Below, piece by piece: positions 15,500 to 64,000 of a stretch of 64,000 nucleotides of DNA; position 1 is the stretch's first letter, and the number at the start of each line of letters is the position of its first letter. Source of the DNA: Cyanophora paradoxa CCMP329 (lineage: Eukaryota > Plantae > Glaucophyta); contig QPMI01000629.1 in the NCBI GenBank assembly GCA_004431415.1, positions 1-64,000 on the forward strand, read 5' to 3'. The position numbers and the translations under genes were made by a program. Below the pieces are notes generated by a model. It ran no database searches. It saw only the letters and a list, made by a program, of their open reading frames with translations, and was not told the origin of the DNA.

Positions 15500-15548
15500 T
15501 AAGTGGTAAAAGAAGATGTAACAGGTTAATTAATTGTTTTTCAGTGTG

Positions 15549-20618: not shown

Positions 20619-20769
20619 GGGCGTGGGGCGAGGCGGGGCGGGACGCCTGGGAGGAGCTCGTCGACATCAAAGTCAGGGACCTCAATGGAGAAAGGCGGCG
20701 GCGGCGGCGGCGCCCTGCCCCGGCGAGGAGGCGCGGCCCGGCTTCCGGAAGGCCCGAGCCTTGAGCACC

Positions 20770-34798: not shown

Positions 34799-34835
<37 letters not shown>

Positions 34836-35810: not shown

Positions 35811-36011
35811 CTCGACTTGACACAGATGGCATGGACACATCAGTTATATCTCTATATGAGCTAGCCATTTGTCTCGGTGCACGTGTCACATGTACGTATA
35901 CAGTGTGTGCGAATTCATTCATTACTTGACGATCGTCATGAATATTTGTATTCGAACGAAAAGTGAGGATCTATAGCTCTAAATAGCTAAAACGTTTCTA
36001 TCCTATAGCGT

Positions 36012-36170
36012 CCGGTGACGGCACCAGTTGCCTGTCCGACACCTCCGGCGACGGCACCAGTTGCCTGTCCGACGCCTCCGGTAACGGCATGCGCACCAGT
36101 TGCCTGTCCGACGCCTCCGGTGATGTTACCAGTTGCAATTGCCTGTCCGACGCCTCCGGCGACGGCACGT
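36012..36170. repeat. ~30-36-bp minisatellite downstream of the giant gene (copy at 30767-30925)
   Basis: About four copies of ccgg(c/t)gacggcaccagttgcctgtccgacgcct. Confidence 0.75.
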
Positions 36171-36343
36171 GCACTTGCACTGGTTGACGAATACATGAAC
36201 AGCTACAGTATACTTACGATATTTATACTCGAAAACGAATAAGAGTAATTGCAATCGAATAATTATATGAATTTATAGTAATTCCGCTCAAACGTTTGAA
36301 TGGCGGCTCAGTTAACGTTTTATGTGTGTACGAGGAACGGCAA

Positions 36344-39300: not shown

Positions 39301-42300
39301 ATGATGCATACGAATCGCTATCGCGCTCCTGATCGTTATCTTCAGACAGCTATAAGTTAATCCCAGCGCTAGCAACAGCGGTGCAGGTGGGCGATGCACG
39401 CAAAAAAAATATATCGATATATATATATATAAGTTATTTTGTTAGCTTGGTGCGAGGAGCTCGCGATAGAGAGCGAGCCCGGGGGCCCGGGGCGGGCGGA
39501 CCTTGACGGTCGCCGTGGTCACGCCAGCAGTGAAGGTGGCCTCCACGGCGGCGAGCGCAGCCGCGCCCTTTGGCGTGCACGTGACGGCGGCCTTCGTTGC
39601 CGTGTTGACTACCGTCAGGGTGAACTCGACCTTCCCGTCGGCGTCGCGCGGCTTGTCGATTCCAGCGGTGGGGGCCGTGATGGTCGGAGCGACGGGCGCT
39701 GCAGATGCAGCGGCCGTGGTGAAGGTTACTGCCGCGGATGCGCCGGAAGTTCCCGACGGGTCCGTCTGAGTGGCAGTGCACGTGTGCTCGGTGCCGGCCG
39801 CGAGGGCGACCTGCGCGCACGCAAACCGTGAGCTTGCACCGATTACAATCTCCACATGCACAGGTCTAGATCTACACACAGATGTAAATATCATGAATAG
39901 CTAAATATAGGATCATATGTGTGTAAACGAAAGTGGGCGTGGAAGGTTTGGAGCTAGATTCTTGCACAACGATCGCGAGCCGCTGAGCTATAGATCTATA
40001 TATAGATTTCGGCGAAAGCTCTGGAAGTGCAGGTGGGCGATGCCCGCAAACGATATAATTAATATTATAAAACATTTTTGTTAGCTTGGTGCGAGGAGCT
40101 CGCGATCGAGCTCGAGCCCGGGGGCCCGGGGCGGGCGGACCTTGACGGTCGCCGTGGTCACGCCAGCAGTGAAGGTGGCCTCCACGGCGGCGAGCGCAGC
40201 CGCGCCCTTTGGCGTGCACGTGACGGCGGCCTTCGTTGCCGTGTTGACTACCGTCAGGGTGAACTCGACCTTCCCGTCGGCGTCGCGCGGCTTGTCGATT
40301 CCAGCGGTGGGGGCCGTGATGGTCGGAGCGACGGGCGCTGCAGACGTCGTGAAGGTTACTGCCGCGGATGCGCCGGAAGTTCCCGACGGGTCCGTCTGAG
40401 TGGCAGTGCACGTGTGCTCGGTGCCGGCCGCGAGGGCGACCTGCGCGCACGCAAACCGTGAGCTTGCACCGATTATGATCTCCACGGGTCTACACAAAGA
40501 TCTAAATCAAATATCATGAATAGGATCATATTTGTGTAAACGAAAGTGGGCGTGGAAGGTTTGGAGCTAGATTCTTGCGCAACGAGCCGCTGAGCTATTT
40601 ATATAGATCTAGATTTCGGCGAAAGCTCTGGAGGTGCAGGTGGGCGATGCCCGCAAACGATGTAATATTTTGTTAGCTTGGTGCGAGGAGCTCGCGATCG
40701 AGCTCGAGCCCGGGGGCCCGGGGCGGGCGGACCTTGACGGTCGCCGTGGTCACGCCAGCAGTGAAGGTGGCCTCCACGGCGGCGAGCGCAGCCGCGCCCT
40801 TTGGCGTGCACGTGACGGCGGCCTTCGTCGCCGTGTTGACTACCGTCAGGGTGAACTCGACCTTCCCGTCGGCGTCGCGCGGCTTGTCGATTCCAGCGGT
40901 GGGGGCCGTGATGGTCGGAGCGACGGGTGCTGCAGACGTCGTGAAGGTTACTGCCGCGGATGCGCCGGAAGTTCCCGACGGGTCCGTCTGAGTGGCCGTG
41001 CACGTGTGCTCGGTGCTGGCCGCGAGGGCGACCTGCGCGCACGCAAACCGTGAGCTTGCACCGATTACAATCTCCACATGCACAGGTCTAGATCTACACA
41101 CAGATGTAAATATCATGAATAGGATCATATGTGTAAACGAAAGTGGGCGTGGAAGGTTTGGAGATAGATTCTTGCACAACGATCGCGAGCCGCTGAGCTA
41201 TAGATCTAGATTTCGGCGAAAGCTCTGGAGGTGCAGGTGGGCGATGCCCGCAAACGATATAATTAATATTATAAAACATTTTGTAAGCTTGGTGCGAGGA
41301 GCTCGCGATCGAGCTCGAGCCCGGGGGCCCGGGGCGGGCGGACCTTGACGGTCGCCGTGGTCACGCCAGCAGTGAAGGTGGCCTCCACGGCGGCGAGCGC
41401 AGCCGCGCCCTTTGGCGTGCACGTGACGGCGGCCTTCGTCGCCGTGTTGACTACCGTCAGGGTGAACTCGACCTTCCCGTCGGCGTCGCGCGGCTTGTCG
41501 ATTCCAGCGGTGGGGGCCGTGATGGTCGGAGCGACGGGCGCTGCAGATGCAGCGGCCGTGGTGAAGGTTACTGCCGCGGATGCGCCGGAAGTTCCCGACG
41601 GGTCCGTCTGAGTGGCAGTGCACGTGTGCTCGGTGCCGGCCGCGAGGGCGACCTGCGCGCACGCAAACCGTGAGCTTGCACCGATTACAATCTCCACATG
41701 CACAGGTCTAGATCTACACACAGATGTAAATATCATGAATAGCTAAATATAGGATCATATGTGTAAACGAAAGTGGGCGTGGAAGGTTTGGAGATAGATT
41801 CTTGCACAACGATCGCGAGCCGCTGAGCTATAGATCTATATATAGATTTCGGCGAAAGCTCTGGAGGTGCAGGTGGGCGATGCCCGCAAACGATGTAATA
41901 TTTTGTTAGCTTGGTGCGAGGAGCTCGCGATCGAGCTCGAGCCCGGGGGCCCGGGGCGGGCGGACCTTGACGGTCGCCGTGGTCACGCCAGCAGTGAAGG
42001 TGGCCTCCACGGCGGCGAGCGCAGCCGCGCCCTTTGGCGTGCACGTGACGGCGGCCTTCGTCGCCGTGTTGACTACCGTCAGGGTGAACTCGACCTTCCC
42101 GTCGGCGTCGCGCGGCTTGTCGATTCCAGCGGTGGGGGCCGTGATGGTCGGAGCGACGGGCGCTGCAGATGCAGCGGCCGTGGTGAAGGTTACTGCCGCG
42201 GATGCGCCGGAAGTTCCCGACGGGTCCGTCTGAGTGGCAGTGCACGTGTGCTCGGTGCCGGCCGCGAGGGCGACCTGCGCGCACGCAAACCGTGAGCTTG

Positions 42301-45300
42301 CACCGATTACAATCTCCACATGCACAGATCTAGATCTACACACAGATGTAAATATCATGAATAGCTAAATATAGGATCATATGTGTAAACGAAAGTGGGC
42401 GTGGAAGGTTTGGAGCTAGATTCTTGCACAACGATCGCGAGCCGCTGAGCTATAGATCTAGATTTCGGCGAAAGCTCTGGAGGTGCAGGTGGGCGATGCC
42501 CGCAAACGATGTAATATTTTGTTAGCTTGGTGCGAGGAGCTCGCGATCGAGCTCGAGCCCGGGGGCCCGGGGCGGGCGGACCTTGACGGTCGCCGTGGTC
42601 ACGCCAGCAGTGAAGGTGGCCTCCACGGCGGCGAGCGCAGCCGCGCCCTTTGGCGTGCACGTGACGGCGGCCTTCGTCGCCGTGTTGACTACCGTCAGGG
42701 TGAACTCGACCTTCCCGTCGGCGTCGCGCGGCTTGTCGATTCCAGCGGTGGGGGCCGTGATGGTCGGAGCGACGGGCGCTGCAGATGCAGCGGCCGTGGT
42801 GAAGGTTACTGCCGCGGATGCGCCGGAAGTTCCCGACGGGTCCGTCTGAGTGGCAGTGCACGTGTGCTCGGTGCCGGCCGCGAGGGCGACCTGCGCGCAC
42901 GCAAACCGTGAGCTTGCACCGATTACAATCTCCACATGCACAGGTCTAGATCTACACACAGATGTAAATATCATGAATAGCTAAATATAGGATCATATGT
43001 GTAAACGAAAGTGGGCGTGGAAGGTTTGGAGCTAGATTCTTGCACAACGATCGCGAGCCGCTGAGCTATAGATCTAGATTTCGGCGAAAGCTCTGGAGGT
43101 GCAGGTGGGCGATGCCCGCAAACGATGTAATATTTTGTTAGCTTGGTGCGAGGAGCTCGCGATCGAGCTCGAGCCCGGGGGCCCGGGGCGGGCGGACCTT
43201 GACGGTCGCCGTGGTCACGCCAGCAGTGAAGGTGGCCTCCACGGCGGCGAGCGCAGCCGCGCCCTTTGGCGTGCACGTGACGGCGGCCTTCGTCGCCGTG
43301 TTGACTACCGTCAGGGTGAACTCGACCTTCCCGTCGGCGTCGCGCGGCTTGTCGATTCCAGCGGTGGGGCCGTGATGGTCGGAGCGACGGGCGCTGCAGA
43401 TGCAGCGGCCGTGGTGAAGGTTACTGCCGCGGATGCGCCGGAAGTTCCCGACGGGTCCGTCTGAGTGGCAGTGCACGTGTGCTCGGTGCCGGCCGCGAGG
43501 GCGACCTGCGCGCACGCAAACCGTGAGCTTGCACCGATTACAATCTCCACATGCACAGATCTAGATCTACACACAGATGTAAATATCATGAATAGCTAAA
43601 TATAGGATCATATGTGTAAACGAAAGTGGGCGTGGAAGGTTTGGAGCTAGATTCTTGCACAACGATCGCGAGCCGCTGAGCTATAGATCTAGATTTCGGC
43701 GAAAGCTCTGGAGGTGCAGGTGGGCGATGCCCGCAAACGATGTAATATTTTGTTAGCTTGGTGCGAGGAGCTCGCGATCGAGCTCGAGCCCGGGGGCCCG
43801 GGGCGGGCGGACCTTGACGGTCGCCGTGGTCACGCCAGCAGTGAAGGTGGCCTCCACGGCGGCGAGCGCAGCCGCGCCCTTTGGCGTGCACGTGACGGCG
43901 GCCTTCGTCGCCGTGTTGACTACCGTCAGGGTGAACTCGACCTTCCCGTCGGCGTCGCGCGGCTTGTCGATTCCAGCGGTGGGGGCCGTGATGGTCGGAG
44001 CGACGGGCGCTGCAGATGCAGCGGCCGTGGTGAAGGTTACTGCCGCGGATGCGCCGGAAGTTCCGACGGGTCCGTCTGAGTGGCAGTGCACGTGTGCTCG
44101 GTGCCGGCCGCGAGGGCGACCTGCGCGCACGCAAACCGTGAGCTTGCACCGATTACAATCTCCACATGCACAGGTCTAGATCTACACACAGATGTAAATA
44201 TCATGAATAGCTAAATATAGGATCATATGTGTAAACGAAAGTGGGCGTGGAAGGTTTGGAGCTAGATTCTTGCACAACGATCGCGAGCCGCTGAGCTATA
44301 GATCTAGATTTCGGCGAAAGCTCTGGAGGTGCAGGTGGGCGATGCCCGCAAACGATGTAATATTTTGTTAGCTTGGTGCGAGGAGCTCGCGATCGAGCTC
44401 GAGCCCGGGGCCCGGGGCGGGCGGACCTTGACGGTCGCCGTGGTCACGCCAGCAGTGAAGGTGGCCTCCACGGCGGCGAGCGCAGCCGCGCCCTTTGGCG
44501 TGCACGTGACGGCGGCCTTCGTCGCCGTGTTGACTACCGTCAGGGTGAACTCGACCTTCCCGTCGGCGTCGCGCGGCTTGTCGATTCCAGCGGTGGGGGC
44601 CGTGATGGTCGGAGCGACGGGCGCTGCAGATGCAGCGGCCGTGGTGAAGGTTACTGCCGCGGATGCGCCGGAAGTTCCCGACGGGTCCGTCTGAGTGGCA
44701 GTGCACGTGTGCTCGGTGCCGGCCGCGAGGGCGACCTGCGCGCACGCAAACCGTGAGCTTGCACCGATTACAATCTCCACATGCACAGGTCTAGATCTAC
44801 ACACAGATGTAAATATCATGAATAGCTAAATATAGGATCATATGTGTAAACGAAAGTGGGCGTGGAAGGTTTGGAGCTAGATTCTTGCACAACGATCGCG
44901 AGCCGCTGAGCTATAGATCTAGATTTCGGCGAAAGCTCTGGAGGTGCAGGTGGGCGATGCCCGCAAACGATGTAATATTTTGTTAGCTTGGTGCGAGGAG
45001 CTCGCGATCGAGCTCGAGCCCGGGGCCCGGGGCGGGCGGACCTTGACGGTCGCCGTGGTCACGCCAGCAGTGAAGGTGGCCTCCACGGCGGCGAGCGCAG
45101 CCGCGCCCTTTGGCGTGCACGTGACGGCGGCCTTCGTCGCCGTGTTGACTACCGTCAGGGTGAACTCGACCTTCCCGTCGGCGTCGCGCGGCTTGTCGAT
45201 TCCAGCGGTGGGGGCGTGATGGTCGGAGCGACGGGCGCTGCAGATGCAGCGGCCGTGGTGAAGGTTACTGCCGCGGATGCGCCGGAAGTTCCCGACGGGT

Positions 45301-48300
45301 CCGTCTGAGTGGCAGTGCACGTGTGCTCGGTGCCGGCCGCGAGGGCGACCTGCGCGCACGCAAACCGTGAGCTTGCACCGATTACAATCTCCACATGCAC
45401 AGGTCTAGATCTACACACAGATGTTAATATCATGAATAGCTAAATATAGGATCATATGTGTAAACGAAAGTGGGCGTGGAAGGTTTGGAGCTAGATTCTT
45501 GCACAACGATCGCGAGCCGCTGAGCTATAGATCTAGATTTCGGCGAAAGCTCTGGAGGTGCAGGTGGGCGATGCCCGCAAACGATGTAATATTTTGTTAG
45601 CTTGGTGCGAGGAGCTCGCGATCGAGCTCGAGCCCGGGGGCCCGGGGCGGGCGGACCTTGACGGTCGCCGTGGTCACGCCAGCAGTGAAGGTGGCCTCCA
45701 CGGCGGCGAGCGCAGCCGCGCCCTTTGGCGTGCACGTGACGGCGGCCTTCGTCGCCGTGTTGACTACCGTCAGGGTGAACTCGACCTTCCCGTCGGCGTC
45801 GCGCGGCTTGTCGATTCCAGCGGTGGGGCCGTGATGGTCGGAGCGACGGGCGCTGCAGATGCAGCGGCCGTGGTGAAGGTTACTGCCGCGGATGCGCCGG
45901 AAGTTCCCGACGGGTCCGTCTGAGTGGCAGTGCACGTGTGCTCGGTGCCGGCCGCGAGGGCGACCTGCGCGCACGCAAACCGTGAGCTTGCACGATTACA
46001 ATCTCCACATGCACAGGTCTAGATCTACACACAGATGTTAATATCATGAATAGCTAAATATAGGATCATATGTGTAAACGAAAGTGGGCGTGGAAGGTTT
46101 GGAGCTAGATTCTTGCACAACGATCGCGAGCCGCTGAGCTATAGATCAGATTTCGGCGAAAGCTCTGGAGGTGCAGGTGGGCGATGCCCGCAAACGATGT
46201 AATATTTTGTTAGCTTGGTGCGAGGAGCTCGCGATCGAGCTCGAGCCCGGGGGCCGGGGCGGGCGGACCTTGACGGTCGCCGTGGTCACGCCAGCAGTGA
46301 AGGTGGCCTCCACGGCGGCGAGCGCAGCCGCGCCTTTGGCGTGCACGTGACGGCGGCCTTCGTCGCCGTGTTGACTACCGTCAGGGTGAACTCGACCTTC
46401 CCGTCGGCGTCGCGCGGCTTGTCGATTCCAGCGGTGGGGGCCGTGATGGTCGGAGCGACGGGCGCTGCAGATGCAGCGGCCGTGGTGAAGGTTACTGCCG
46501 CGGATGCGCCGGAAGTTCCCGACGGGTCCGTCTGAGTGGCAGTGCACGTGTGCTCGGTGCCGGCCGCGAGGGCGACCTGCGCGCACGCAAACCGTGAGCT
46601 TGCACCGATTACAATCTCCACATGCACAGGTCTAGATCTACACACAGATGTAAATATCATGAATAGGATCATATGTGTACAAGTGGGGTTGAAGTTTGGA
46701 GCTAGATTCTTGCACAACGAGCCGCTGAGCTATAGATCTAGATTTCGGCGAAAGCTCTGGAGGTGCAGGTGGGCGATGCCCGCAAACGATGTAATATTTT
46801 GTTAGCTTGGTGCGAGGAGCTCGCGATCGAGCTCGAGCCCGGGGGCCCGGGGCGGGCGGACCTTGACGGTCGCCGTGGTCACGCCAGCAGTGAAGGTGGC
46901 CTCCACGGCGGCGAGCGCAGCCGCGCCCTTTGGCGTGCACGTGACGGCGGCCTTCGTCGCCGTGTTGACTACCGTCAGGGTGAACTCGACCTTCCCGTCG
47001 GCGTCGCGCGGCTTGTCGATTCCAGCGGTGGGGGCCGTGATGGTCGGAGCGACGGGCGCTGCAGATGCAGCGGCCGTGGTGAAGGTTACTGCCGCGGATG
47101 CGCCGGAAGTTCCCGACGGGTCCGTCTGAGTGGCAGTGCACGTGTGCTCGGTGCCGGCCGCGAGGGCGACCTGCGCGCACGCAAACCGTGAGCTTGCACC
47201 GATTACAATCTCCACATGCACAGGTCTAGATCTACACACAGATGTAAATATCATGAATAGTAAATATAGGATCATATGTGTAAACGAAGTGGCGTGGAAG
47301 TTTGGAGATAGATTCTTGCACAACGATCGCGAGCCGCTGAGCTATAGATCTAGATTTCGGCGAAAGCTCTGGAGGTGCAGGTGGGCGATGCCCGCAAACG
47401 ATGTAATATTTTGTTAGCTTGGTGCGAGGAGCTCGCGATCGAGCTCGAGCCCGGGGCCCGGGGCGGGCGGACCTTGACGGTCGCCGTGGTCACGCCAGCA
47501 GTGAAGGTGGCCTCCACGGCGGCGAGCGCAGCCGCGCCCTTTGGCGTGCACGTGACGGCGGCCTTCGTCGCCGTGTTGACTACCGTCAGGGTGAACTCGA
47601 CCTTCCGTCGGCGTCGCGCGGCTTGTCGATTCCAGCGGTGGGGCCGTGATGGTCGGAGCGACGGGCGCTGCAGATGCAGCGGCCGTGGTGAAGGTTACTG
47701 CCGCGGATGCGCCGGAAGTTCCCGACGGGTCCGTCTGAGTGGCAGTGCACGTGTGCTCGGTGCCGGCCGCGAGGGCGACCTGCGCGCACGCAAACCGTGA
47801 GCTTGCACCGATTACAATCTCCACATGCACAGGTCTAGATCTACACACAGATGTAAATATCATGAATAGCTAAATATAGGATCATATGTGTAAACGAAAG
47901 TGGGCGTGGAAGGTTTGGAGCTAGATTCTTGCACAACGATCGGAGCCGCTGAGCTATAGATCTAGATTTCGGCGAAAGCTCTGGAGGTGCAGGTGGGCGA
48001 TGCCCGCAAACGATGTAATATTTTGTTAGCTTGGTGCGAGGAGCTCGCGATCGAGCTCGAGCCCGGGGGCCCGGGGCGGGCGGACCTTGACGGTCGCCGT
48101 GGTCACGCCAGCAGTGAAGGTGGCCTCCACGGCGGCGAGCGCAGCCGCGCCCTTTGGCGTGCACGTGACGGCGGCCTTCGTCGCCGTGTTGACTACCGTC
48201 AGGGTGAACTCGACCTTCCCGTCGGCGTCGCGCGGCTTGTCGATTCCAGCGGTGGGGGCCGTGATGGTCGGAGCGACGGGCGCTGCAGATGCAGCGGCCG

Positions 48301-51300
48301 TGGTGAAGGTTACTGCCGCGGATGCGCCGGAAGTTCCCGACGGGTCCGTCTGAGTGGCAGTGCACGTGTGCTCGGTGCCGGCCGCGAGGGCGACCTGCGC
48401 GCACGCAAACCGTGAGCTTGCACCGATTACAATCTCCACATGCACAGGTCTAGATCTACACACAGATGTAAATATCATGAATAGCTAAATATAGGATCAT
48501 ATGTGTAAACGAAAGTGGGCGTGGAAGGTTTGGAGCTAGATTCTTGCACAACGATCGCGAGCCGCTGAGCTATAGATCTAGATTTCGGCGAAAGCTCTGG
48601 AGGTGCAGGTGGGCGATGCCCGCAAACGATGTAATATTTTGTTAGCTTGGTGCGAGGAGCTCGCGATCGAGCTCGAGCCCGGGGCCCGGGGCGGGCGGAC
48701 CTTGACGGTCGCCGTGGTCACGCCAGCAGTGAAGGTGGCCTCCACGGCGGCGAGCGCAGCCGCGCCCTTTGGCGTGCACGTGACGGCGGCCTTCGTCGCC
48801 GTGTTGACTACCGTCAGGGTGAACTCGACCTTCCCGTCGGCGTCGCGCGGCTTGTCGATTCCAGCGGTGGGGGCCGTGATGGTCGGAGCGACGGGCGCTG
48901 CAGATGCAGCGGCCGTGGTGAAGGTTACTGCCGCGGATGCGCCGGAAGTTCCCGACGGGTCCGTCTGAGTGGCAGTGCACGTGTGCTCGGTGCCGGCCGC
49001 GAGGGCGACCTGCGCGCACGCAAACCGTGAGCTTGCACCGATTACAATCTCCACATGCACAGTCTAGATCTACACACAGATGTAAATATCATGAATAGCT
49101 AAATATAGGATCATATGTGTAAACGAAAGTGGGCGTGGAAGGTTTGGAGCTAGATTCTTGCACAACGATCGCGAGCCGCTGAGCTATAGATCTAGATTTC
49201 GGCGAAAGCTCTGGAGGTGCAGGTGGGCGATGCCCGCAAACGATGTAATATTTTGTTAGCTTGGTGCGAGGAGCTCGCGATCGAGCTCGAGCCCGGGGGC
49301 CCGGGGCGGGCGGACCTTGACGGTCGCCGTGGTCACGCCAGCAGTGAAGGTGGCCTCCACGGCGGCGAGCGCAGCCGCGCCCTTTGGCGTGCACGTGACG
49401 GCGGCCTTCGTCGCCGTGTTGACTACCGTCAGGGTGAACTCGACCTTCCCGTCGGCGTCGCGCGGCTTGTCGATTCCAGCGGTGGGGGCCGTGATGGTCG
49501 GAGCGACGGGCGCTGCAGATGCAGCGGCCGTGGTGAAGGTTACTGCCGCGGATGCGCCGGAAGTTCCCGACGGGTCCGTCTGAGTGGCAGTGCACGTGTG
49601 CTCGGTGCCGGCCGCGAGGGCGACCTGCGCGCACGCAAACCGTGAGCTTGCACCGATTACAATCTCCACATGCACAGGTCTAGATCTACACACAGATGTA
49701 AATATCATGAATAGCTAAATATAGGATCATATGTGTAAACGAAAGTGGGCGTGGAAGGTTTGGAGCTAGATTCTTGCACAACGATCGCGAGCCGCTGAGC
49801 TATAGATCTAGATTTCGGCGAAAGCTCTGGAGGTGCAGGTGGGCGATGCCCGCAAACGATGTAATATTTTGTTAGCTTGGTGCGAGGAGCTCGCGATCGA
49901 GCTCGAGCCCGGGGGCCCGGGCGGGCGGACCTTGACGGTCGCCGTGGTCACGCCAGCAGTGAAGGTGGCCTCCACGGCGGCGAGCGCAGCCGCGCCCTTT
50001 GGCGTGCACGTGACGGCGGCCTTCGTCGCCGTGTTGACTACCGTCAGGGTGAACTCGACCTTCCCGTCGGCGTCGCGCGGCTTGTCGATTCCAGCGGTGG
50101 GGGCCGTGATGGTCGGAGCGACGGGCGCTGCAGATGCAGCGGCCGTGGTGAAGGTTACTGCCGCGGATGCGCCGGAAGTTCCCGACGGGTCCGTCTGAGT
50201 GGCAGTGCACGTGTGCTCGGTGCCGGCCGCGAGGGCGACCTGCGCGCACGCAAACCGTGAGCTTGCACCGATTACAATCTCCACATGCACAGGTCTAGAT
50301 CTACACACAGATGTAAATATCATGAATAGCTAAATATAGGATCATATGTGTAAACGAAAGTGGGCGTGGAAGGTTTGGAGCTAGATTCTTGCACAACGAT
50401 CGCGAGCCGCTGAGCTATAGATCTAGATTTCGGCGAAAGCTCTGGAGGTGCAGGTGGGCGATGCCCGCAAACGATGTAATATTTTGTTAGCTTGGTGCGA
50501 GGAGCTCGCGATCGAGCTCGAGCCCGGGGCCCGGGGCGGGCGGACCTTGACGGTCGCCGTGGTCACGCCAGCAGTGAAGGTGGCCTCCACGGCGGCGAGC
50601 GCAGCCGCGCCCTTTGGCGTGCACGTGACGGCGGCCTTCGTCGCCGTGTTGACTACCGTCAGGGTGAACTCGACCTTCCCGTCGGCGTCGCGCGGCTTGT
50701 CGATTCCAGCGGTGGGGGCCGTGATGGTCGGAGCGACGGGCGCTGCAGATGCAGCGGCCGTGGTGAAGGTTACTGCCGCGGATGCGCCGGAAGTTCCCGA
50801 CGGGTCCGTCTGAGTGGCAGTGCACGTGTGCTCGGTGCCGGCCGCGAGGGCGACCTGCGCGCACGCAAACCGTGAGCTTGCACCGATTACAATCTCCACA
50901 TGCACAGGTCTAGATCTACACACAGATGTAAATATCATGAATAGCTAATATAGGATCATATGTGTAAACGAAGTGGGCGTGGAAGGTTTGGAGCTAGATT
51001 CTTGCACAACGATCGCGAGCCGCTGAGCTATAGATCTAGATTTCGGCGAAAGCTCTGGAGGTGCAGGTGGGCGATGCCCGCAAACGATGTAATATTTTGT
51101 TAGCTTGGTGCGAGGAGCTCGCGATCGAGCTCGAGCCCGGGGGCCCGGGGCGGGCGGACCTTGACGGTCGCCGTGGTCACGCCAGCAGTGAAGGTGGCCT
51201 CCACGGCGGCGAGCGCAGCCGCGCCCTTTGGCGTGCACGTGACGGCGGCCTTCGTCGCCGTGTTGACTACCGTCAGGGTGAACTCGACCTTCCGTCGGCG

Positions 51301-54300: not shown

Positions 54301-57300
54301 TTTGGCGTGCACGTGACGGCGGCCTTCGTCGCCGTGTTGACTACCGTCAGGGTGAACTCGACCTTCCCGTCGGCGTCGCGCGGCTTGTCGATTCCAGCGG
54401 TGGGGCCGTGATGGTCGGAGCGACGGGCGCTGCAGATGCAGCGGCCGTGGTGAAGGTTACTGCCGCGGATGCGCCGGAAGTTCCCGACGGGTCCGTCTGA
54501 GTGGCAGTGCACGTGTGCTCGGTGCCGGCCGCGAGGGCGACCTGCGCGCACGCAAACCGTGAGCTTGCACCGATTACAATCTCCACATGCACAGGTCTAG
54601 ATCTACACACAGATGTAAATATCATGAATAGCTAAATATAGGATCATATGTGTAAACGAAAGTGGGCGTGGAAGGTTTGGAGCTAGATTCTTGCACAACG
54701 ATCGCGAGCCGCTGAGCTATAGATCAAGATTTCGGCGAAAGCTCTGGAGGTGCAGGTGGGCGATGCCCGCAAACGATATAATATTTTGTTAGCTTGGTGC
54801 GAGGAGCTCGCGATCGAGCTCGAGCCCGGGGGCCCGGGGCGGGCGGACCTTGACGGTCGCCGTGGTCACGCCAGCAGTGAAGGTGGCCTCCACGGCGGCG
54901 AGCGCAGCCGCGCCCTTTGGCGTGCACGTGACGGCGGCCTTCGTCGCCGTGTTGACTACCGTCAGGGTGAACTCGACCTTCCCGTCGGCGTCGCGCGGCT
55001 TGTCGATTCCAGCGGTGGGGGCCGTGATGGTCGGAGCGACGGGCGCTGCAGATGCAGCGGCCGTGGTGAAGGTTACTGCCGCGGATGCGCCGGAAGTTCC
55101 CGACGGGTCCGTCTGAGTGGCAGTGCACGTGTGCTCGGTGCCGGCCGCGAGGGCGACCTGCGCGCACGCAAACCGTGAGCTTGCACCGATTACAATCTCC
55201 ACATGCACAGGTCTAGATCTACACACAGATGTAAATATCATGAATAGGATCATATGTGTTTCAAGTGGAAGGTTTCAAGTTTGGAGCTAGATTCTTGCAC
55301 AACGAGCCGCTGAGCTATAGATCTAGATTTCGGCGAAAGCTCTGGAGGTGCAGGTGGGCGATGCCCGCAAACGATGTAATATTTTGTTAGCTTGGTGCGA
55401 GGAGCTCGCGATCGAGCTCGAGCCCGGGGGCCCGGGGCGGGCGGACCTTGACGGTCGCCGTGGTCACGCCAGCAGTGAAGGTGGCCTCCACGGCGGCGAG
55501 CGCAGCCGCGCCCTTTGGCGTGCACGTGACGGCGGCCTTCGTCGCCGTGTTGACTACCGTCAGGGTGAACTCGACCTTCCCGTCGGCGTCGCGCGGCTTG
55601 TCGATTCCAGCGGTGGGGGCCGTGATGGTCGGAGCGACGGGCGCTGCAGATGCAGCGGCCGTGGTGAAGGTTACTGCCGCGGATGCGCCGGAAGTTCCCG
55701 ACGGGTCCGTCTGAGTGGCAGTGCACGTGTGCTCGGTGCCGGCCGCGAGGGCGACCTGCGCGCACGCAAACCGTGAGCTTGCACCGATTACAATCTCCAC
55801 ATGCACAGGTCTAGATCTACACACAGATGTAAATATCATGAATAGCTAAATATAGGATCATATGTGTAAACGAAAGTGGGCGTGGAAGGTTTGGAGATAG
55901 ATTCTTGCACAACGATCGCGAGCCGCTGAGCTATAGATCTAGATTTCGGCGAAAGCTCTGGAGGTGCAGGTGGGCGATGCCCGCAAACGATGTAATATTT
56001 TGTTAGCTTGGTGCGAGGAGCTCGCGATCGAGCTCGAGCCCGGGGGCCCGGGGCGGGCGGACCTTGACGGTCGCCGTGGTCACGCCAGCAGTGAAGGTGG
56101 CCTCCACGGCGGCGAGCGCAGCCGCGCCCTTTGGCGTGCACGTGACGGCGGCCTTCGTCGCCGTGTTGACTACCGTCAGGGTGAACTCGACCTTCCCGTC
56201 GGCGTCGCGCGGCTTGTCGATTCCAGCGGTGGGGGCCGTGATGGTCGGAGCGACGGGCGCTGCAGATGCAGCGGCCGTGGTGAAGGTTACTGCCGCGGAT
56301 GCGCCGGAAGTTCCCGATGGGTCCGTCTGAGTGGCAGTGCACGTGTGCTCGGTGCCGGCCGCGAGGGCGACCTGCGCGCACGCAAACCGTGAGCTTGCAC
56401 CGATTACAATCTCCACATGCACAGGTCTAGATCTACACACAGATGTAAATATCATGAATAGCTAAATATAGGATCATATGTGTAAACGAAAGTGGGCGTG
56501 GAAGGTTTGGAGCTAGATTCTTGCACAACGAGCCGCTGAGCTATAGATCTAGATTTCGGCGAAAGCTCTGGAGGTGCAGGTGGGCGATGCCCGCAAACGA
56601 TATAATATTTTGTTAGCTTGGTGCGAGGAGCTCGCGATAGAGAGCGAGCCCGGGGGCCCGGGGCGGGCGGACCTTGACGGGCGCCGTGGTCACGCCAGCA
56701 GTGAAGGTGGCCTCCACGGCGGCGAGCGCAGCCGCGCCCTTTGGCGTGCACGTGACGGCGGCCTTCGTCGCCGTGTTGACTACCGTCAGGGTGAACTCGA
56801 CCTTCCCGTCGGCGTCGCGCGGCTTGTCGATTCCAGCGGTGGGGGCCGTGATGGTCGGAGCGACGGGCGCTGCAGATGCAGCGGCCGTGGTGAAGGTTAC
56901 TGCCGCGGATGCGCCGGAAGTTCCCGACGGGTCCGTCTGAGTGGCAGTGCACGTGTGCTCGGTGCCGGCCGCGAGGGCGACCTGCGCGCACGCAAACCGT
57001 GAGCTTGCACCGATTACAATCTCCACATGCACAGGTCTAGATCTACACACAGATGTAAATATCATGAATAGCTAAATATAGGATCATATGTGTAAACGAA
57101 AGTGGGCGTGGAAGGTTTGGAGATAGATTCTTGCACAACGATCGCGAGCCGCTGAGCTATAGATCTAGATTTCGGCGAAAGCTCTGGAGGTGCAGGTGGG
57201 CGATGCCCGCAAACGATGTAATATTTTGTTAGCTTGGTGCGAGGAGCTCGCGATCGAGCCCGAGCCCGGGGGCCCGGGCGGGCGGACCTTGACGGCGCCG

Positions 57301-60300
57301 TGGTCACGCCAGCAGTGAAGGTGGCCTCCACGGCGGCGAGCGCAGCCGCGCCCTTTGGCGTGCACGTGACGGCGGCCTTCGTCGCCGTGTTGACTACCGT
57401 CAGGGTGAACTCGACCTTCCCGTCGGCGTCGCGCGGCTTGTCGATTCCAGCGGTGGGGCCGTGATGGTCGGAGCGACGGGCGCTGCAGATGCAGCGGCCG
57501 TGGTGAAGGTTACTGCCGCGGATGCGCCGGAAGTTCCCGACGGGTCCGTCTGAGTGGCAGTGCACGTGTGCTCGGTGCCGGCCGCGAGGGCGACCTGCGC
57601 GCACGCAAACCGTGAGCTTGCACCGATTACAATCTCCACATGCACAGTCTAGATCTACACACAGATGTAAATATCATGAATAGCTAAATATAGGATCATA
57701 TGTGTAAACGAAAGTGGGCGTGGAAGGTTTGGAGCTAGATTCTTGCACAACGATCGCGAGCCGCTGAGCTATAGATCTAGATTTCGGCGAAAGCTCTGGA
57801 GGTGCAGGTGGGCGATGCCCGCAAACGATGTAATATTTTGTTAGCTTGGTGCGAGGAGCTCGCGATCGAGCTCGAGCCCGGGGCCCGGGCGGGCGGACCT
57901 TGACGGTCGCCGTGGTCACGCCAGCAGTGAAGGTGGCCTCCACGGCGGCGAGCGCAGCCGCGCCCTTTGGCGTGCACGTGACGGCGGCCTTCGTCGCCGT
58001 GTTGACTACCGTCAGGGTGAACTCGACCTTCCCGTCGGCGTCGCGCGGCTTGTCGATTCCAGCGGTGGGGCCGTGATGGTCGGAGCGACGGGCGCTGCAG
58101 ATGCAGCGGCCGTGGTGAAGGTTACTGCCGCGGATGCGCCGGAAGTTCCCGACGGGTCCGTCTGAGTGGCAGTGCACGTGTGCTCGGTGCCGGCCGCGAG
58201 GGCGACCTGCGCGCACGCAAACCGTGAGCTTGCACCGATTACAATCTCCACATGCACAGTCTAGATCTACACACAGATGTAAATATCATGAATAGCTAAA
58301 TATAGGATCATATGTGTAAACGAAAGTGGGCGTGGAAGGTTTGGAGCTAGATTCTTGCACAACGATCGCGAGCCGCTGAGCTATAGATCTAGATTTCGGC
58401 GAAAGCTCTGGAGGTGCAGGTGGGCGATGCCCGCAAACGATGTAATATTTTGTTAGCTTGGTGCGAGGAGCTCGCGATCGAGCTCGAGCCCCGGGGCCCG
58501 GGGCGGGCGGACCTTGACGGTCGCCGTGGTCACGCCAGCAGTGAAGGTGGCCTCCACGGCGGCGAGCGCAGCCGCGCCCTTTGGCGTGCACGTGACGGCG
58601 GCCTTCGTCGCCGTGTTGACTACCGTCAGGGTGAACTCGACCTTCCCGTCGGCGTCGCGCGGCTTGTCGATTCCAGCGGTGGGGGCCGTGATGGTCGGAG
58701 CGACGGGCGCTGCAGATGCAGCGGCCGTGGTGAAGGTTACTGCCGCGGATGCGCCGGAAGTTCCCGACGGGTCCGTCTGAGTGGCAGTGCACGTGTGCTC
58801 GGTGCCGGCCGCGAGGGCGACCTGCGCGCACGCAAACCGTGAGCTTGCACCGATTACAATCTCCACATGCACAGGTCTAGATCTACACACAGATGTAAAT
58901 ATCATGAATAGCTAAATATAGGATCATATGTGTAAACGAAAGTGGGCGTGGAAGGTTTGGAGCTAGATTCTTGCACAACGATCGCGAGCCGCTGAGCTAT
59001 AGATCTAGATTTCGGCGAAAGCTCTGGAGGTGCAGGTGGGCGATGCCCGCAAACGATGTAATATTTTGTTAGCTTGGTGCGAGGAGCTCGCGATCGAGCT
59101 CGAGCCCGGGGGCCCGGGGCGGGCGGACCTTGACGGTCGCCGTGGTCACGCCAGCAGTGAAGGTGGCCTCCACGGCGGCGAGCGCAGCCGCGCCCTTTGG
59201 CGTGCACGTGACGGCGGCCTTCGTCGCCGTGTTGACTACCGTCAGGGTGAACTCGACCTTCCCGTCGGCGTCGCGCGGCTTGTCGATTCCAGCGGTGGGG
59301 CCGTGATGGTCGGAGCGACGGGCGCTGCAGATGCAGCGGCCGTGGTGAAGGTTACTGCCGCGGATGCGCCGGAAGTTCCCGACGGGTCCGTCTGAGTGGC
59401 AGTGCACGTGTGCTCGGTGCCGGCCGCGAGGGCGACCTGCGCGCACGCAAACCGTGAGCTTGCACCGATTACAATCTCCACATGCACAGGTCTAGATCTA
59501 CACACAGATGTAAATATCATGAATAGCTAAATATAGGATCATATGTGTAAACGAAAGTGGGCGTGGAAGGTTTGGAGCTAGATTCTTGCACAACGATCGC
59601 GAGCCGCTGAGCTATAGATCTAGATTTCGGCGAAAGCTCTGGAGGTGCAGGTGGGCGATGCCCGCAAACGATGTAATATTTTGTTAGCTTGGTGCGAGGA
59701 GCTCGCGATCGAGCTCGAGCCCGGGGCCCGGGGCGGGCGGACCTTGACGGTCGCCGTGGTCACGCCAGCAGTGAAGGTGGCCTCCACGGCGGCGAGCGCA
59801 GCCGCGCCCTTTGGCGTGCACGTGACGGCGGCCTTCGTCGCCGTGTTGACTACCGTCAGGGTGAACTCGACCTTCCCGTCGGCGTCGCGCGGCTTGTCGA
59901 TTCCAGCGGTGGGGGCCGTGATGGTCGGAGCGACGGGCGCTGCAGATGCAGCGGCCGTGGTGAAGGTTACTGCCGCGGATGCGCCGGAAGTTCCCGACGG
60001 GTCCGTCTGAGTGGCAGTGCACGTGTGCTCGGTGCCGGCCGCGAGGGCGACCTGCGCGCACGCAAACCGTGAGCTTGCACCGATTACAATCTCCACATGC
60101 ACAGTCTAGATCTACACACAGATGTAAATATCATGAATAGCTAAATATAGGATCATATGTGTAAACGAAAGTGGGCGTGGAAGGTTTGGAGCTAGATTCT
60201 TGCACAACGATCGCGAGCCGCTGAGCTATAGATCTAGATTTCGGCGAAAGCTCTGGAGGTGCAGGTGGGCGATGCCCGCAAACGATGTAATATTTTGTTA

Positions 60301-63300
60301 GCTTGGTGCGAGGAGCTCGCGATCGAGCTCGAGCCCGGGGCCCGGGGCGGGCGGACCTTGACGGTCGCCGTGGTCACGCCAGCAGTGAAGGTGGCCTCCA
60401 CGGCGGCGAGCGCAGCCGCGCCCTTTGGCGTGCACGTGACGGCGGCCTTCGTCGCCGTGTTGACTACCGTCAGGGTGAACTCGACCTTCCCGTCGGCGTC
60501 GCGCGGCTTGTCGATTCCAGCGGTGGGGCCGTGATGGTCGGAGCGACGGGCGCTGCAGATGCAGCGGCCGTGGTGAAGGTTACTGCCGCGGATGCGCCGG
60601 AAGTTCCCGACGGGTCCGTCTGAGTGGCAGTGCACGTGTGCTCGGTGCCGGCCGCGAGGGCGACCTGCGCGCACGCAAACCGTGAGCTTGCACCGATTAC
60701 AATCTCCACATGCACAGGTCTAGATCTACACACAGATGTAAATATCATGAATAGCTAAATATAGGATCATATGTGTAAACGAAAGTGGGCGTGGAAGGTT
60801 TGGAGCTAGATTCTTGCACAACGATCGCGAGCCGCTGAGCTATAGATCTAGATTTCGGCGAAAGCTCTGGAGGTGCAGGTGGGCGATGCCCGCAAACGAT
60901 GTAATATTTTGTTAGCTTGGTGCGAGGAGCTCGCGATCGAGCTCGAGCCCGGGGGCCCGGGGCGGGCGGACCTTGACGGTCGCCGTGGTCACGCCAGCAG
61001 TGAAGGTGGCCTCCACGGCGGCGAGCGCAGCCGCGCCCTTTGGCGTGCACGTGACGGCGGCCTTCGTCGCCGTGTTGACTACCGTCAGGGTGAACTCGAC
61101 CTTCCCGTCGGCGTCGCGCGGCTTGTCGATTCCAGCGGTGGGGGCCGTGATGGTCGGAGCGACGGGCGCTGCAGATGCAGCGGCCGTGGTGAAGGTTACT
61201 GCCGCGGATGCGCCGGAAGTTCCCGACGGGTCCGTCTGAGTGGCAGTGCACGTGTGCTCGGTGCCGGCCGCGAGGGCGACCTGCGCGCACGCAAACCGTG
61301 AGCTTGCACCGATTACAATCTCCACATGCACAGGTCTAGATCTACACACAGATGTAAATATCATGAATAGCTAAATATAGGATCATATGTGTAAACGAAA
61401 GTGGGCGTGGAAGGTTTGGAGCTAGATTCTTGCACAACGATCGCGAGCCGCTGAGCTATAGATCTAGATTTCGGCGAAAGCTCTGGAGGTGCAGGTGGGC
61501 GATGCCCGCAAACGATGTAATATTTTGTTAGCTTGGTGCGAGGAGCTCGCGATCGAGCTCGAGCCCGGGGGCCCGGGGCGGGCGGACCTTGACGGTCGCC
61601 GTGGTCACGCCAGCAGTGAAGGTGGCCTCCACGGCGGCGAGCGCAGCCGCGCCCTTTGGCGTGCACGTGACGGCGGCCTTCGTCGCCGTGTTGACTACCG
61701 TCAGGGTGAACTCGACCTTCCCGTCGGCGTCGCGCGGCTTGTCGATTCCAGCGGTGGGGGCCGTGATGGTCGGAGCGACGGGCGCTGCAGATGCAGCGGC
61801 CGTGGTGAAGGTTACTGCCGCGGATGCGCCGGAAGTTCCCGACGGGTCCGTCTGAGTGGCAGTGCACGTGTGCTCGGTGCCGGCCGCGAGGGCGACCTGC
61901 GCGCACGCAAACCGTGAGCTTGCACCGATTACAATCTCCACATGCACAGGTCTAGATCTACACACAGATGTAAATATCATGAATAGCTAAATATAGGATC
62001 ATATGTGTAAACGAAAGTGGGCGTGGAAGGTTTGGAGCTAGATTCTTGCACAACGATCGCGAGCCGCTGAGCTATAGATCTAGATTTCGGCGAAAGCTCT
62101 GGAGGTGCAGGTGGGCGATGCCCGCAAACGATGTAATATTTTGTTAGCTTGGTGCGAGGAGCTCGCGATCGAGCTCGAGCCCGGGGGCCCGGGGCGGGCG
62201 GACCTTGACGGTCGCCGTGGTCACGCCAGCAGTGAAGGTGGCCTCCACGGCGGCGAGCGCAGCCGCGCCCTTTGGCGTGCACGTGACGGCGGCCTTCGTC
62301 GCCGTGTTGACTACCGTCAGGGTGAACTCGACCTTCCCGTCGGCGTCGCGCGGCTTGTCGATTCCAGCGGTGGGGGCCGTGATGGTCGGAGCGACGGGCG
62401 CTGCAGATGCAGCGGCCGTGGTGAAGGTTACTGCCGCGGATGCGCCGGAAGTTCCCGACGGGTCCGTCTGAGTGGCAGTGCACGTGTGCTCGGTGCCGGC
62501 CGCGAGGGCGACCTGCGCGCACGCAAACCGTGAGCTTGCACCGATTACAATCTCCACATGCACAGGTCTAGATCTACACACAGATGTTAATATCATGAAT
62601 AGCTAAATATAGGATCATATGTGTAAACGAAAGTGGGCGTGGAAGGTTTGGAGCTAGATTCTTGCACAACGATCGCGAGCCGCTGAGCTATAGATCTAGA
62701 TTTCGGCGAAAGCTCTGGAGGTGCAGGTGGGCGATGCCCGCAAACGATGTAATATTTTGTTAGCTTGGTGCGAGGAGCTCGCGATCGAGCTCGAGCCCGG
62801 GGGCCCGGGGCGGGCGGACCTTGACGGTCGCCGTGGTCACGCCAGCAGTGAAGGTGGCCTCCACGGCGGCGAGCGCAGCCGCGCCCTTTGGCGTGCACGT
62901 GACGGCGGCCTTCGTCGCCGTGTTGACTACCGTCAGGGTGAACTCGACCTTCCCGTCGGCGTCGCGCGGCTTGTCGATTCCAGCGGTGGGGCCGTGATGG
63001 TCGGAGCGACGGGCGCTGCAGATGCAGCGGCCGTGGTGAAGGTTACTGCCGCGGATGCGCCGGAAGTTCCCGACGGGTCCGTCTGAGTGGCAGTGCACGT
63101 GTGCTCGGTGCCGGCCGCGAGGGCGACCTGCGCGCACGCAAACCGTGAGCTTGCACCGATTACAATCTCCACATGCACAGGTCTAGATCTACACACAGAT
63201 GTAAATATCATGAATAGCTAAATATAGGATCATATGTGTAAACGAAAGTGGGCGTGGAAGGTTTGGAGCTAGATTCTTGCACAACGATCGCGAGCCGCTG

Positions 63301-64000
63301 AGCTATAGATCAAGATTTCGGCGAAAGCTCTGGAGGTGCAGGTGGGCGATGCCCGCAAACGATATAATATTTTGTTAGCTTGGTGCGAGGAGCTCGCGAT
63401 CGAGCTCGAGCCCGGGGGCCCGGGGCGGGCGGACCTTGACGGTCGCCGTGGTCACGCCAGCAGTGAAGGTGGCCTCCACGGCGGCGAGCGCAGCCGCGCC
63501 CTTTGGCGTGCACGTGACGGCGGCCTTCGTCGCCGTGTTGACTACCGTCAGGGTGAACTCGACCTTCCCGTCGGCGTCGCGCGGCTTGTCGATTCCAGCG
63601 GTGGGGGCCGTGATGGTCGGAGCGACGGGCGCTGCAGATGCAGCGGCCGTGGTGAAGGTTACTGCCGCGGATGCGCCGGAAGTTCCCGACGGGTCCGTCT
63701 GAGTGGCAGTGCACGTGTGCTCGGTGCCGGCCGCGAGGGCGACCTGCGCGCACGCAAACCGTGAGCTTGCACCGATTACAATCTCCACATGCACAGGTCT
63801 AGATCTACACACAGATGTAAATATCATGAATAGGATCATATGTGTTTCAAGTGGAAGGTTTCAAGTTTGGAGCTAGATTCTTGCACAACGAGCCGCTGAG
63901 CTATAGATCTAGATTTCGGCGAAAGCTCTGGAGGTGCAGGTGGGCGATGCCCGCAAACGATGTAATATTTTGTTAGCTTGGTGCGAGGAGCTCGCGATCG
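36344..64000 (-). CDS. Giant spliced cell-surface protein: at least 40 FN3/Ig-like repeats, Pro/Ser linker, REJ-like segment, GAIN/GPS, hydrophobic C-terminus (5' end outside window)
   Basis: GT-AG exons join in frame: repeat exons (e.g. 39810-39502), 39266-39083, 39012-38942 ('APSGGSCLVFP'), 38841-38695 ('VTCSGWQSASAPLKY'), 38586-38449 ('LTVAVEDSAG'), several helical exons, 36913-36608 ('FFNATSKAWEVC...TCNHLTP') and 36520-36344 ('FSLM...MLLLLGVTVALLFGRQH*'). Confidence 0.82.
39434..64000 (-). repeat. ~615-bp tandem array, 40 complete units; each unit is one phase-0 exon (309 nt; 300 nt in two units) plus one ~300-nt intron
   Basis: Every unit has acceptor 'gcgcgcag|GTCGCC' and donor 'GTCAAG|gtccgc'. 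The exon encodes 103 aa, VALAAGTEHTC...TTATVK. Confidence 0.95.

Follow-up and report, generated by a model that had tools for sequence, protein, structure and literature searches.

A tandem exon–intron array in Cyanophora paradoxa probably codes for a long stalk of Ig-like domains within a single, very large gene

On the minus strand of the window analyzed here (64,000 nucleotides of Cyanophora paradoxa contig QPMI01000629.1), 40 exon–intron units of ~615 bp follow one another in tandem. That this array is protein-coding is well supported by homology, predicted fold, the contrast in divergence between exons and introns, and GC3, as had been proposed in an earlier, sequence-only reading, in which the stretch was taken for more than a satellite. 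Each unit would represent one 309-nt phase-0 exon with its intron of ~306 nt. In the explanation that we favor, and consider probable, the array occupies the middle of a very large minus-strand gene for a single-pass surface protein, in which a tail follows the repeat stalk and comprises a REJ-like region, a GPS-like motif and a transmembrane (TM) helix.

With a period above 500, the array escapes TRF, and it was found instead by a general repeat search, which gave 40 copies spaced by 592–639 bp, and by pattern matching of the borders. Matching the splice sites across the window returned 41 acceptors (CAG|GTCGC) and 40 donors (GTCAAG|GTCCGCC), which set 40 exons running from 63743 down to 39502. 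These patterns bear out the 40 GT-AG-bounded phase-0 exons described earlier and place them on the minus strand, which had not been given. The statement that most exons measure 309 nt is true of 24 of the 40; two others are 300 nt long, and the remaining 14 (307–308 nt) are frameshifted. All intact array exons are in phase 0 at both ends. The introns measure 285–330 nt, mostly 305–307 nt, except the final one. The features of the array are as follows:

63744..64000, minus strand: incomplete intron, cut by the end of the window; the array goes on beyond it, toward the 5' end of the gene
39502..63743, minus strand: tandem array, 40 units of ~615 bp (border patterns, repeat search, exon lengths, divergence)
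43198..43505, minus strand: exon 34, frameshifted, with C4 replacing C5 at 43363–43370 (pattern matching, run comparison)
42582..42890, minus strand: exon 35, intact, 309 nt, with the C5 run at 42747–42755
40141..41032, minus strand: units 38 and 39, with 300-nt exons (41032–40733 and 40440–40141) and an in-frame 9-nt linker deletion
39267..39501, minus strand: last array intron, 235 nt, the 5' part like the array introns and the 3' part diverged

The 9-nt deletion of units 38 and 39, also noticed in the earlier reading, turns the linker AAASAA into SAA and keeps the frame. A repeat stretch with the tryptic peptides around it is VEFTLTVVNTATK. No RNA family was found by an Rfam scan of positions 36000–43000. 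Because the window ends within an intron, more than 40 units make up the array. Units with an 'SAS' linker, absent from the window, occur in two published gene models of the same contig (g21481 and g21482; P0002 and P0003), and among the DNA contigs, those of the array have a depth of 3583–4840 vs. 84 for the unique flank (ratio ~43–58). The genome probably holds ~45–55 units.

Each array exon begins with the final third of an Ig-like domain, passes through an Ala/Pro linker and ends two thirds of the way into the following domain. The intron falls between residues 65 and 66 of ~100, inside a predicted beta strand, and splicing at GTCAAG|GTCGCC would join the first 65 residues, from one exon, to the last 35, from the next, into one Ig-like sandwich. 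The published models P0003 and P0006, which span the junction, were used for the tests of the whole domain. With an alignment of mostly bacterial sequences, AlphaFold2 modeled it as an eight-strand beta-sandwich (pLDDT 91.1, pTM 0.81), whose fifth strand (residues 61–67) spans the exon junction. Structural neighbors of the model were an FN3 domain of NCAM (Z 11.1, the top FN3), glucodextranase domain B (Z 10.1) and a BIg domain of SiiE (Z 9.7). In a Foldseek search of the PDB, all matches were generic FN3/E-set domains with E above 0.002. When two exons were modeled by AlphaFold from the single sequence, the result was poor (pLDDT 65) and was left out of the fold search. The AlphaFold2 model, with its mainly bacterial alignment, agrees with an Ig-like sandwich of ~90–100 residues that is repeated head to tail, and it supports the view that joined exons would rebuild a two-Cys Ig-like/FN3-like domain, as the sequence-only reading had suggested in proposing an intron in mid-domain. 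GT-AG borders, constant phase and a contiguous domain across the junction occur together here, as in a spliced tandem-exon gene.

A phmmer search of the whole library (1.84 billion proteins) retrieved first a paralog in C. paradoxa itself, tig00000478_g1260 (P0005; 3741 aa), with ~38 copies of the domain and 40% identity, and then bacterial Ig-like repeat proteins, among them one from Agrococcus (E 2.9e-20) and an LPXTG protein of Microlunatus (E 1.5e-10). The junction-spanning domain aligns to the paralog and to the bacterial repeats with zero gap at the exon junction. All of the domain copies tested in the bacterial relatives (32/32) are Pfam Big_13, and a mixed profile matched SiiE (1e-23), the RII region of MpAFP (3e-10) and Bap. 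In Pfam, neither the exon nor the junction-spanning domain matched Big_13 (PF19077), the only signals being below the cutoff (Invasin_D3, E 0.28; Big_10, E 0.0044), and a profile built from C. paradoxa alone found nothing below E 0.07 among PDB sequences. Aligned to the bacterial set with hhalign, the C. paradoxa domain reached a probability of 76.6% and E 2e-5 over only 32 columns; the C. paradoxa-only HMM scored a mean of 7.8 bits vs. 0.7 +/- 1.9 for shuffled sequences. On these measures the similarity is weak for any single domain. Similarity to bona fide Big_13 members is significant, and the gathering score of the profile is not reached. Neither exon nor domain matched Pfam fn3 (PF00041), so that of the FN3/Ig-like label given earlier, the likeness to FN3 stands at the level of fold, while the sequence places the domain closer to the Big_13/BIg repeats of bacteria. 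It is probably a divergent relative of these repeats, which make up the extender regions of giant adhesins.

Over units 1–35, exons had a mean pairwise substitution divergence of 0.06%, vs. 0.88% for introns, substitutions being ~15 times fewer in exons. The introns are indeed of low divergence, as had been noted, but the exons are clearly more conserved, so the claim that both are nearly alike in homogeneity holds in part. The GC3 of the exons is 82%, vs. 53% G+C in the intron, and the closing half-domain compared with the array gives a dN/dS of 0.30. We consider it probable that purifying selection acts on the exons and that the near-identity of the units would be maintained by unequal crossover or gene conversion. 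The homogeneous center and diverged edges of the array fit unequal crossover, in line with the concerted evolution proposed before, and with symmetric phase-0 exons, as had also been foreseen, a change in copy number or exon skipping preserves both frame and domain.

In the 14 short exons, the frame is lost through 17 single-base deletions. If these were real, the array could be in decay, a pseudogene or satellite left from a repeat that formerly coded for protein and now yielding no functional product. Besides the proportion of frameshifted exons in the assembly (14/40), the lack of a transcript contig in the RNA-labelled runs and the introns' homogeneity, close to that of the exons, agree with such decay, and homogeneity by itself needs no selection. 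Yet the deletions do not behave as relaxed selection would predict. Twelve lie at one position, in the C5 run, where the change to C4 is found in 12 non-adjacent units, and four in G3 runs, so that all but one (16/17) are in homopolymers. Deletions are about equally common in exons (1.57 per kb) and introns (2.14 per kb) while exon substitutions are ~15 times rarer, which is the signature of technical error. An Illumina-based contig (depth 4553) spans the C5 run of exon 35 unbranched and has the intact C5 only, and no DNA contig carried the C4 form of the exon 34 type; since contigs may drop variants, this favors error, short of proof. Along with the GC3 and dN/dS values, the fact that both 9-nt variants stay in frame also argues against decay, which we regard as improbable. 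The assembly was produced from PacBio RSII reads with Canu and Quiver, then corrected with Illumina data by read mapping (PMC6704402), and PacBio homopolymer errors that escaped this correction most likely account for the 14 frameshifted exons. Provided that they do, the window encodes a product of ~4,114 aa, and the stalk of more than 4,000 aa claimed earlier stands on that same favored condition. A rod of more than 4,100 aa of tandem Ig-like domains might, by analogy with bacterial extender arrays, be ~0.2–0.3 um long. If real and expressed, the gene and its protein would be among the largest of this model glaucophyte.

In the published annotation, where the contig is named tig00021439, the array appears as ~20 small gene models (g21463–g21482, in EukProt). 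The EukProt EP00741 entries P0001–P0004, P0006 and P0053–P0056 (tig00021439_g21463–g21482) match the units exactly, intron read-through included, and in four of them the TVK|VALAAG junction is already spliced as proposed here. Their presence in EukProt speaks for taking the annotation as correct, that is, for ~20 small genes of 124–408 aa, each with its ATG within the 'intron' and ending by read-through. But the single-unit models contain a circularly broken domain, its last third placed ahead of its first two thirds, and have ends that derive from the intron (MIFTS..., ...VRPPRAPGLELDRELLAPS), whereas homologs carry the domain uninterrupted at this junction, and the boundaries of P0054 and P0056, together with their odd internal mini-introns, coincide with frameshift sites. 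That the annotation is right is thus very hard to believe. Most likely, it breaks one gene into ~20 spurious small ones because long-read homopolymer errors were left unpolished inside the repeat, and other giant repeat genes are probably hidden by the same artifact.

The spliced junction GTCAAG|GTCGCC, by which the earlier reading could be checked, was not seen in the Logan contigs of the RNA-labelled runs. Two such runs of C. paradoxa (X21 and X24) gave only chance matches of 18–22 nt, and a third, which carries another organism label (X20), gave one unspliced 163-nt contig of depth 2. When one exon and a published three-exon model were each compared with proteins by word index, every match was a gene model from this same contig, and none was an RNA-derived protein. 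Under the general rules of U1 pairing, GTCCGC is a weak donor. No literature match was found for the contig name tig00021439, and the accessible part of the supplement text of PMC6704402 contains no array gene.

Downstream of the array, a diverged half-domain exon starts at 39266 and completes the last Ig-like domain, closing the array as the sequence-only reading had stated. Most likely, this exon is joined through 14 short introns to a tail of 577 codons. The proposed exons are as follows:

39083..39266, minus strand: closing exon, diverged half-domain (VALNAGTEYKCDATQSD...) and then a Pro/Ser-rich linker; donor GGG|GTGCGT
38948..39012, minus strand: putative 65-nt micro-exon, which would restore the frame from the closing exon to the REJ-like exon
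38449..38841, minus strand: two proposed REJ-like exons, 38841–38695 and 38586–38449 (Pfam below cutoff, ESM Atlas, frame check)
36970..38395, minus strand: range of nine proposed short exons (GT-AG, in frame, no stop)
38395–38351, 38270–38097, 38009–37959, 37867–37742, 37646–37614, minus strand: first five of the nine
37548–37438, 37311–37237, 37150–37088, 37008–36970, minus strand: last four of the nine
36608..36913, minus strand: proposed 306-nt exon ending in ...YTATCNHLTP, GPS-like together with the next exon (FSLM...)
36344..36520, minus strand: putative final exon, with a hydrophobic helix (MIHMLLLLGVTVALLFG) and only three more residues before the stop codon

The REJ profile (PF02010) reached 16.1 bits in Pfam (E 0.0045), short of its gathering cutoff of 25, and a feature search of the ESM Atlas gave REJ clusters in 28 of 30 matches (best 0.95), which serves as a lead only. 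The product of the nine-exon block, largely helical-looking and then Cys-containing, had no family match in Pfam. Across the 306-nt exon and the next, TATCNHLTP|FSLM contains C-x-H-L-T-x-F, which by eye we take to be a GPS-like motif; the first Cys of C-x-C-x-H-L-T/S-x-F is missing, and a proposed 87-nt intron interrupts the motif. The exon had no match in the Pfam, PDB sequence or Atlas searches, nor did a word search with the 192-aa GPS/TM ORF find one. The putative TM helix lies ~40 residues after the motif. A direct splice from 39083 to 38841 was rejected as out of frame by one base, and the 65-nt micro-exon was preferred.

That the tail has to invoke a micro-exon is one reason to consider that the gene might instead stop at the in-frame stop at 39077, into which the closing exon runs 6 nt past its proposed donor. 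The Ig-like stalk would then still be coded, the protein being secreted or otherwise anchored, and the downstream exons would form a separate gene; the RNA-labelled contigs provided no evidence for the tail junctions either. Set against this, the path of 15 exons and 14 introns proved in frame, stop-free and bounded by GT-AG throughout when checked exon by exon, on the same strand as the array and with the next exon only ~70 nt away. Its mean intron of 84.9 nt agrees with the genome mean of 86 bp (PMC6704402). The phases are not artifacts, because the flank matches an Illumina contig base for base, and the order of Ig-like repeats, REJ, GPS and TM is a known architecture. We therefore regard an end at 39077 as unlikely. 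In the favored gene, the stalk would be followed in order by the Pro/Ser linker, the REJ-like region, the GPS-like motif and a single C-terminal membrane helix, and it may hold an N-terminal part, coded outside the window together with any signal peptide, off the cell.

The closest parallels are the bacterial adhesin extender arrays, the kringle IV-2 repeat of LPA and the polycystin-1/REJ ectodomain. In adhesin extenders, tens to more than 100 repeats of nearly the same DNA sequence form a rod that carries other domains outward (PMC5550230, PMC7493085). Like the extenders of MpIBP (RII), SiiE, Bap and LapA, the array codes for tandem Ig-like beta-sandwiches of similar size (103 aa/309 nt here vs. 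104 aa/312 bp in MpIBP RII); such proteins are its nearest relatives outside the species, and both kinds of array are broken or mis-annotated in assemblies. Unlike them, it is eukaryotic, with an intron of spliceosomal type inside the domain in every repeat, its domains alone fall below the Big_13 threshold, and in place of an RTX or type I secretion part it has the REJ-like/GPS-like/TM tail.

In the human LPA kringle IV type 2 array, as in the NBPF Olduvai and DMBT1 SRCR arrays, exon and intron are kept near-identical by concerted evolution. The array shares with them a near-identical coding tandem unit of exon plus intron, and, as in LPA, an intron of the unit interrupts its domain. In LPA, the KIV-2 copy number sets protein size (PMC11261928). 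The unit described here differs from KIV-2 in having a single exon and ~0.6 kb rather than several kb, and in its fold. If real and expressed, it would be an unusually clean eukaryotic case of exon-plus-intron concerted evolution in which selection is seen only in the exons.

Polycystin-1, the sea-urchin REJ proteins and the adhesion-GPCR ectodomains carry a tandem Ig-like run, REJ, and GPS immediately ahead of a membrane helix. The proposed gene, with its REJ-like signal and HLT-x-F motif, follows this order, but its repeats are not PKD, it has one C-terminal helix instead of a 7- or 11-helix body, and its REJ signal is below cutoff, while GAIN/GPS had no match by profile or fold tool. The gene would link the bacterial adhesin extender module with the polycystin/REJ-type ectodomain plan in an early-branching alga. 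As a tentative history, a Big_13-like BIg extender module may have arrived by horizontal transfer, gained an intron within its domain and been amplified through unequal crossover, intron included, to ~50 near-identical copies as the stalk of a polycystin-1/REJ-like receptor; stalk length might be tunable, between strains or by frame-neutral skipping, and a recent sweep could have carried the 309-nt form through the center, leaving an older form of 300 nt at both edges. The paralog has the same domain in tandem, with two Cys and a Q/T-rich F–G motif, but its copies have diverged and are arranged as a three-domain super-repeat.

Repeat finding in the window showed a tandem repeat at 39.4–64 kb, with a period of 592–639 bp and 40 copies, which was not detected by TRF because its period exceeds 500. 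Its coding sense is the minus strand, on which pattern matching found 41 acceptors (CAG/GTCGC) and 40 donors (GTCAAG/GTCCGCC), which together delimit 40 exons between positions 63743 and 39502. The exons are 309 nt long in 24 of the 40 units, 307–308 nt in 14, and 300 nt in two (units 38 and 39) that have lost an in-frame 9-nt linker piece, and the introns are mostly 305–307 nt. Acceptor number 41, at 39269, begins a diverged exon (VALNAGTEYKCDATQSD...). The sequence-only reading was therefore accurate as to the 40 exons, their acceptors and donors, and the diverged closing exon, with the qualifications that the array lies on the minus strand and that the assembly shows frameshifts in one third of the exons. 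Because the window edge falls within an intron, the array is longer than the portion visible.

The earlier reading of the array as coding is largely supported, as several independent lines agree: homology, fold, exon/intron variation, composition and the closing exon. For the tests spanning exon junctions, the database's own published proteins were used as queries, and the whole-library search was made with a published two-exon model. This search detected a C. paradoxa paralog outside the window (tig00000478_g1260; 3741 aa, ~38 copies of the same 98-aa domain, 40% identity) and bacterial Ig-like repeat proteins, among them one from Agrococcus (E 2.9e-20) and an LPXTG protein of Microlunatus (1.5e-10). 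In the alignment, the domain spanning the exon junction was collinear with domains of the paralog and of the bacterial proteins, and no gap fell at the junction. The paralog has no Pfam annotation, and its match scores recur at each third domain, suggesting a three-domain super-repeat.

With the homolog alignment (mostly bacterial), AlphaFold2 predicted an eight-strand sandwich (pLDDT 91.1, pTM 0.81) in which the junction, at residues 65/66, lies inside strand 61–67; the single-sequence run was poor (pLDDT 65). The structural neighbors of the model were FN3 domains (best NCAM, Z 11.1, with 91 residues aligned at rmsd 2.2 Å), the BIg domain of SiiE (Z 9.7) and domain B of glucodextranase, while Foldseek alone gave generic matches only. 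Mean pairwise substitution divergence among units 1–35 was 0.88% in introns vs. 0.06% in exons, and G+C was 82% at third codon positions vs. 53% in the intron consensus. Between the closing exon and the array, 37 of 96 bases differ, and dN/dS is 0.30.

Each of the 32 aligned bacterial relatives matched Pfam Big_13, many of them Big_6 as well, and the mixed profile matched SiiE (1e-23), the MpAFP/MpIBP RII tandemer (3e-10), Bap and a Lap adhesin. Searched alone, none of the C. paradoxa domains reached any Pfam threshold, and no match below E 0.07 was found among PDB sequences. Against the bacterial profile they gave 76.6% probability, confined to the last 32 columns, and an HMM built only from C. 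paradoxa domains scored the bacterial domains at a mean of 7.8 bits vs. 0.7 ± 1.9 for shuffles. Since the relatives are Big_13 yet the C. paradoxa domains are below threshold, we describe the array domain, from profiles and the predicted model, as a divergent Ig fold of Big_13-like type whose topology is FN3-like, without assigning it to a Pfam family.

The reference annotation splits the array into ~20 small genes. By word search, a one-exon query retrieved the EukProt C. paradoxa proteins tig00021439_g21463 to g21482, models of 124–408 aa that match the window exactly, start within an intron (MIFTS...) and read through to the next intron (...VKVRPPRAPGLELDRELLAPS). In four of these (P0003, P0006, P0054 and P0056), 2–4 exons are already spliced together at TVK/VALAAG, two of them with odd mini-introns located at frameshift sites. 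Beyond the window there are at least three further units, since g21481 and g21482 have units with a "SAS" linker that it lacks. Every unit also has long open stretches (128–130 aa) in alternative reading frames and on the complementary strand (39434–39894 and equivalents); these are expected in G+C-rich DNA and are a trap for ORF-based gene calling. No paper naming the contig was found in a literature search.

The exon frameshifts are probably artefacts. All 17 frame lesions are single-base deletions; 12 are a C5-to-C4 change scattered across non-adjacent units, and four are in G3 runs. Single-base deletions occur at 2.14 per kb in introns and 1.57 per kb in exons, whereas substitutions differ 15-fold, which fits sequencing error rather than mutation under the selection revealed by the substitutions. 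The assembly was made from PacBio RSII reads with Canu and Quiver, with Illumina correction via read mapping (PMC6704402). In a C. paradoxa DNA run, a 274-nt contig (depth 4553) crosses the C5 run of unit 35 unbranched, and no contig matched the C4 form of unit 34; this evidence is supportive and not final, because contigs can drop variants. The unique flank 38300–39464 was matched base for base in the same run at depth 84 vs. 3583–4840 for array contigs, a ratio that suggests, as a rough figure, ~43–58 units.

Downstream of the array, we propose a 15-exon path that reaches a stop at 36344 and begins with:

39266–39083, minus strand: closing exon, with a Pro/Ser-rich linker at its end and a good donor (GGG/GTGCGT)
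39012–38948, minus strand: proposed 65-nt micro-exon, with canonical sites, which restores the frame

Direct splicing of the closing exon to the next long ORF was rejected as out of phase. Every exon of the path is bounded by GT-AG, in frame and stop-free, the frame having been checked by a local script. Its introns are 53–126 nt long (mean 84.9), the published genome mean being 86 bp (PMC6704402). The unusual donor hexamer GTCCGC, which all 40 introns of the array use, is found again at one intron proposed for the tail (after 38449), hinting that the splice machinery of C. paradoxa may accept it. Read exon by exon, the products of the proposed tail begin with a REJ-like stretch that was below the Pfam cutoff (REJ, E 0.0045), and in an Atlas feature search 28 of its 30 matches were REJ clusters (best 0.95). 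Next come a segment that looks helical and a beta part whose end, ...YTATCNHLTP, we take to resemble, together with the FSLM... after it, the GPS cleavage motif; Pfam, PDB and Atlas searches with the GPS-like exon were all blank. The tail ends with a hydrophobic helix and three residues.

A direct duplication (27540–31969 and 32760–37214; 4.46 kb, 99.06% identity, spacing ~5.2 kb) takes in the last four proposed exons, GPS-like and TM, plus 3.6 kb downstream. The duplication could be genuine and segmental, in which case it would supply a spare 3' end, or it could have arisen in the assembly. Its copies contain runs of 31 G (29568–29598) and 37 G (34799–34835), and a 900-nt piece also occurs in inverted orientation (26648–27545 vs. 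33645–32742).

Junction reads, the key test named in the sequence-only reading, were not observed in the contigs of the RNA-labelled runs, which, for contigs only, is absence of evidence. None of the database records matching the stretch was marked RNA. In two RNA-labelled C. paradoxa runs, array and tail exons were uncovered, with chance matches of 18–22 nt only, and a third run gave a single unspliced contig (163 nt, depth 2).

We infer splicing, expression and a membrane receptor. The product would be a single-pass surface protein with a rod of 40 to ~55 tandem beta-sandwiches as ectodomain and a REJ/GPS-type juxtamembrane part. MpIBP has ~120 repeats of 104 aa and spans 0.6 µm (PMC5550230), and scaling from it the stalk would be ~0.2–0.3 µm long. 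All exons are phase 0 and each encodes the final part of one domain plus the initial part of its neighbor, so that frame and fold survive when units are gained, lost or skipped. The array center is almost invariant, most differences are in the last five units, and 300-nt exons occur at both ends. A nearly invariant center with differing ends is expected under unequal crossover, as had been proposed earlier, by which the 309-nt variant would have spread through the array middle. The gene belongs with known kinds of system and is not a new kind.

Elsewhere in the window, 1–16300 is a block of 38–42% G+C adjoining host DNA of 60–77% G+C, with dense intronless ORFs. They include a protein-primed type-B DNA polymerase (PF03175, 1.6e-13), a weak rve-like integrase, a C1q-domain fibre-like protein, a patatin and F5/8-type-C fusion, and an endonuclease VII-like protein; the block resembles an integrated element of Polinton-like or virophage-like type. 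A 632-aa ORF at 18720–20618 (minus strand), which combines a reverse transcriptase (RVT_1, 1.4e-10) with an RNase H-like segment, lies beside a 113-bp tandem repeat at 20764–21696 (~8 copies, 77% G+C), and together they are probably a retrotransposon.
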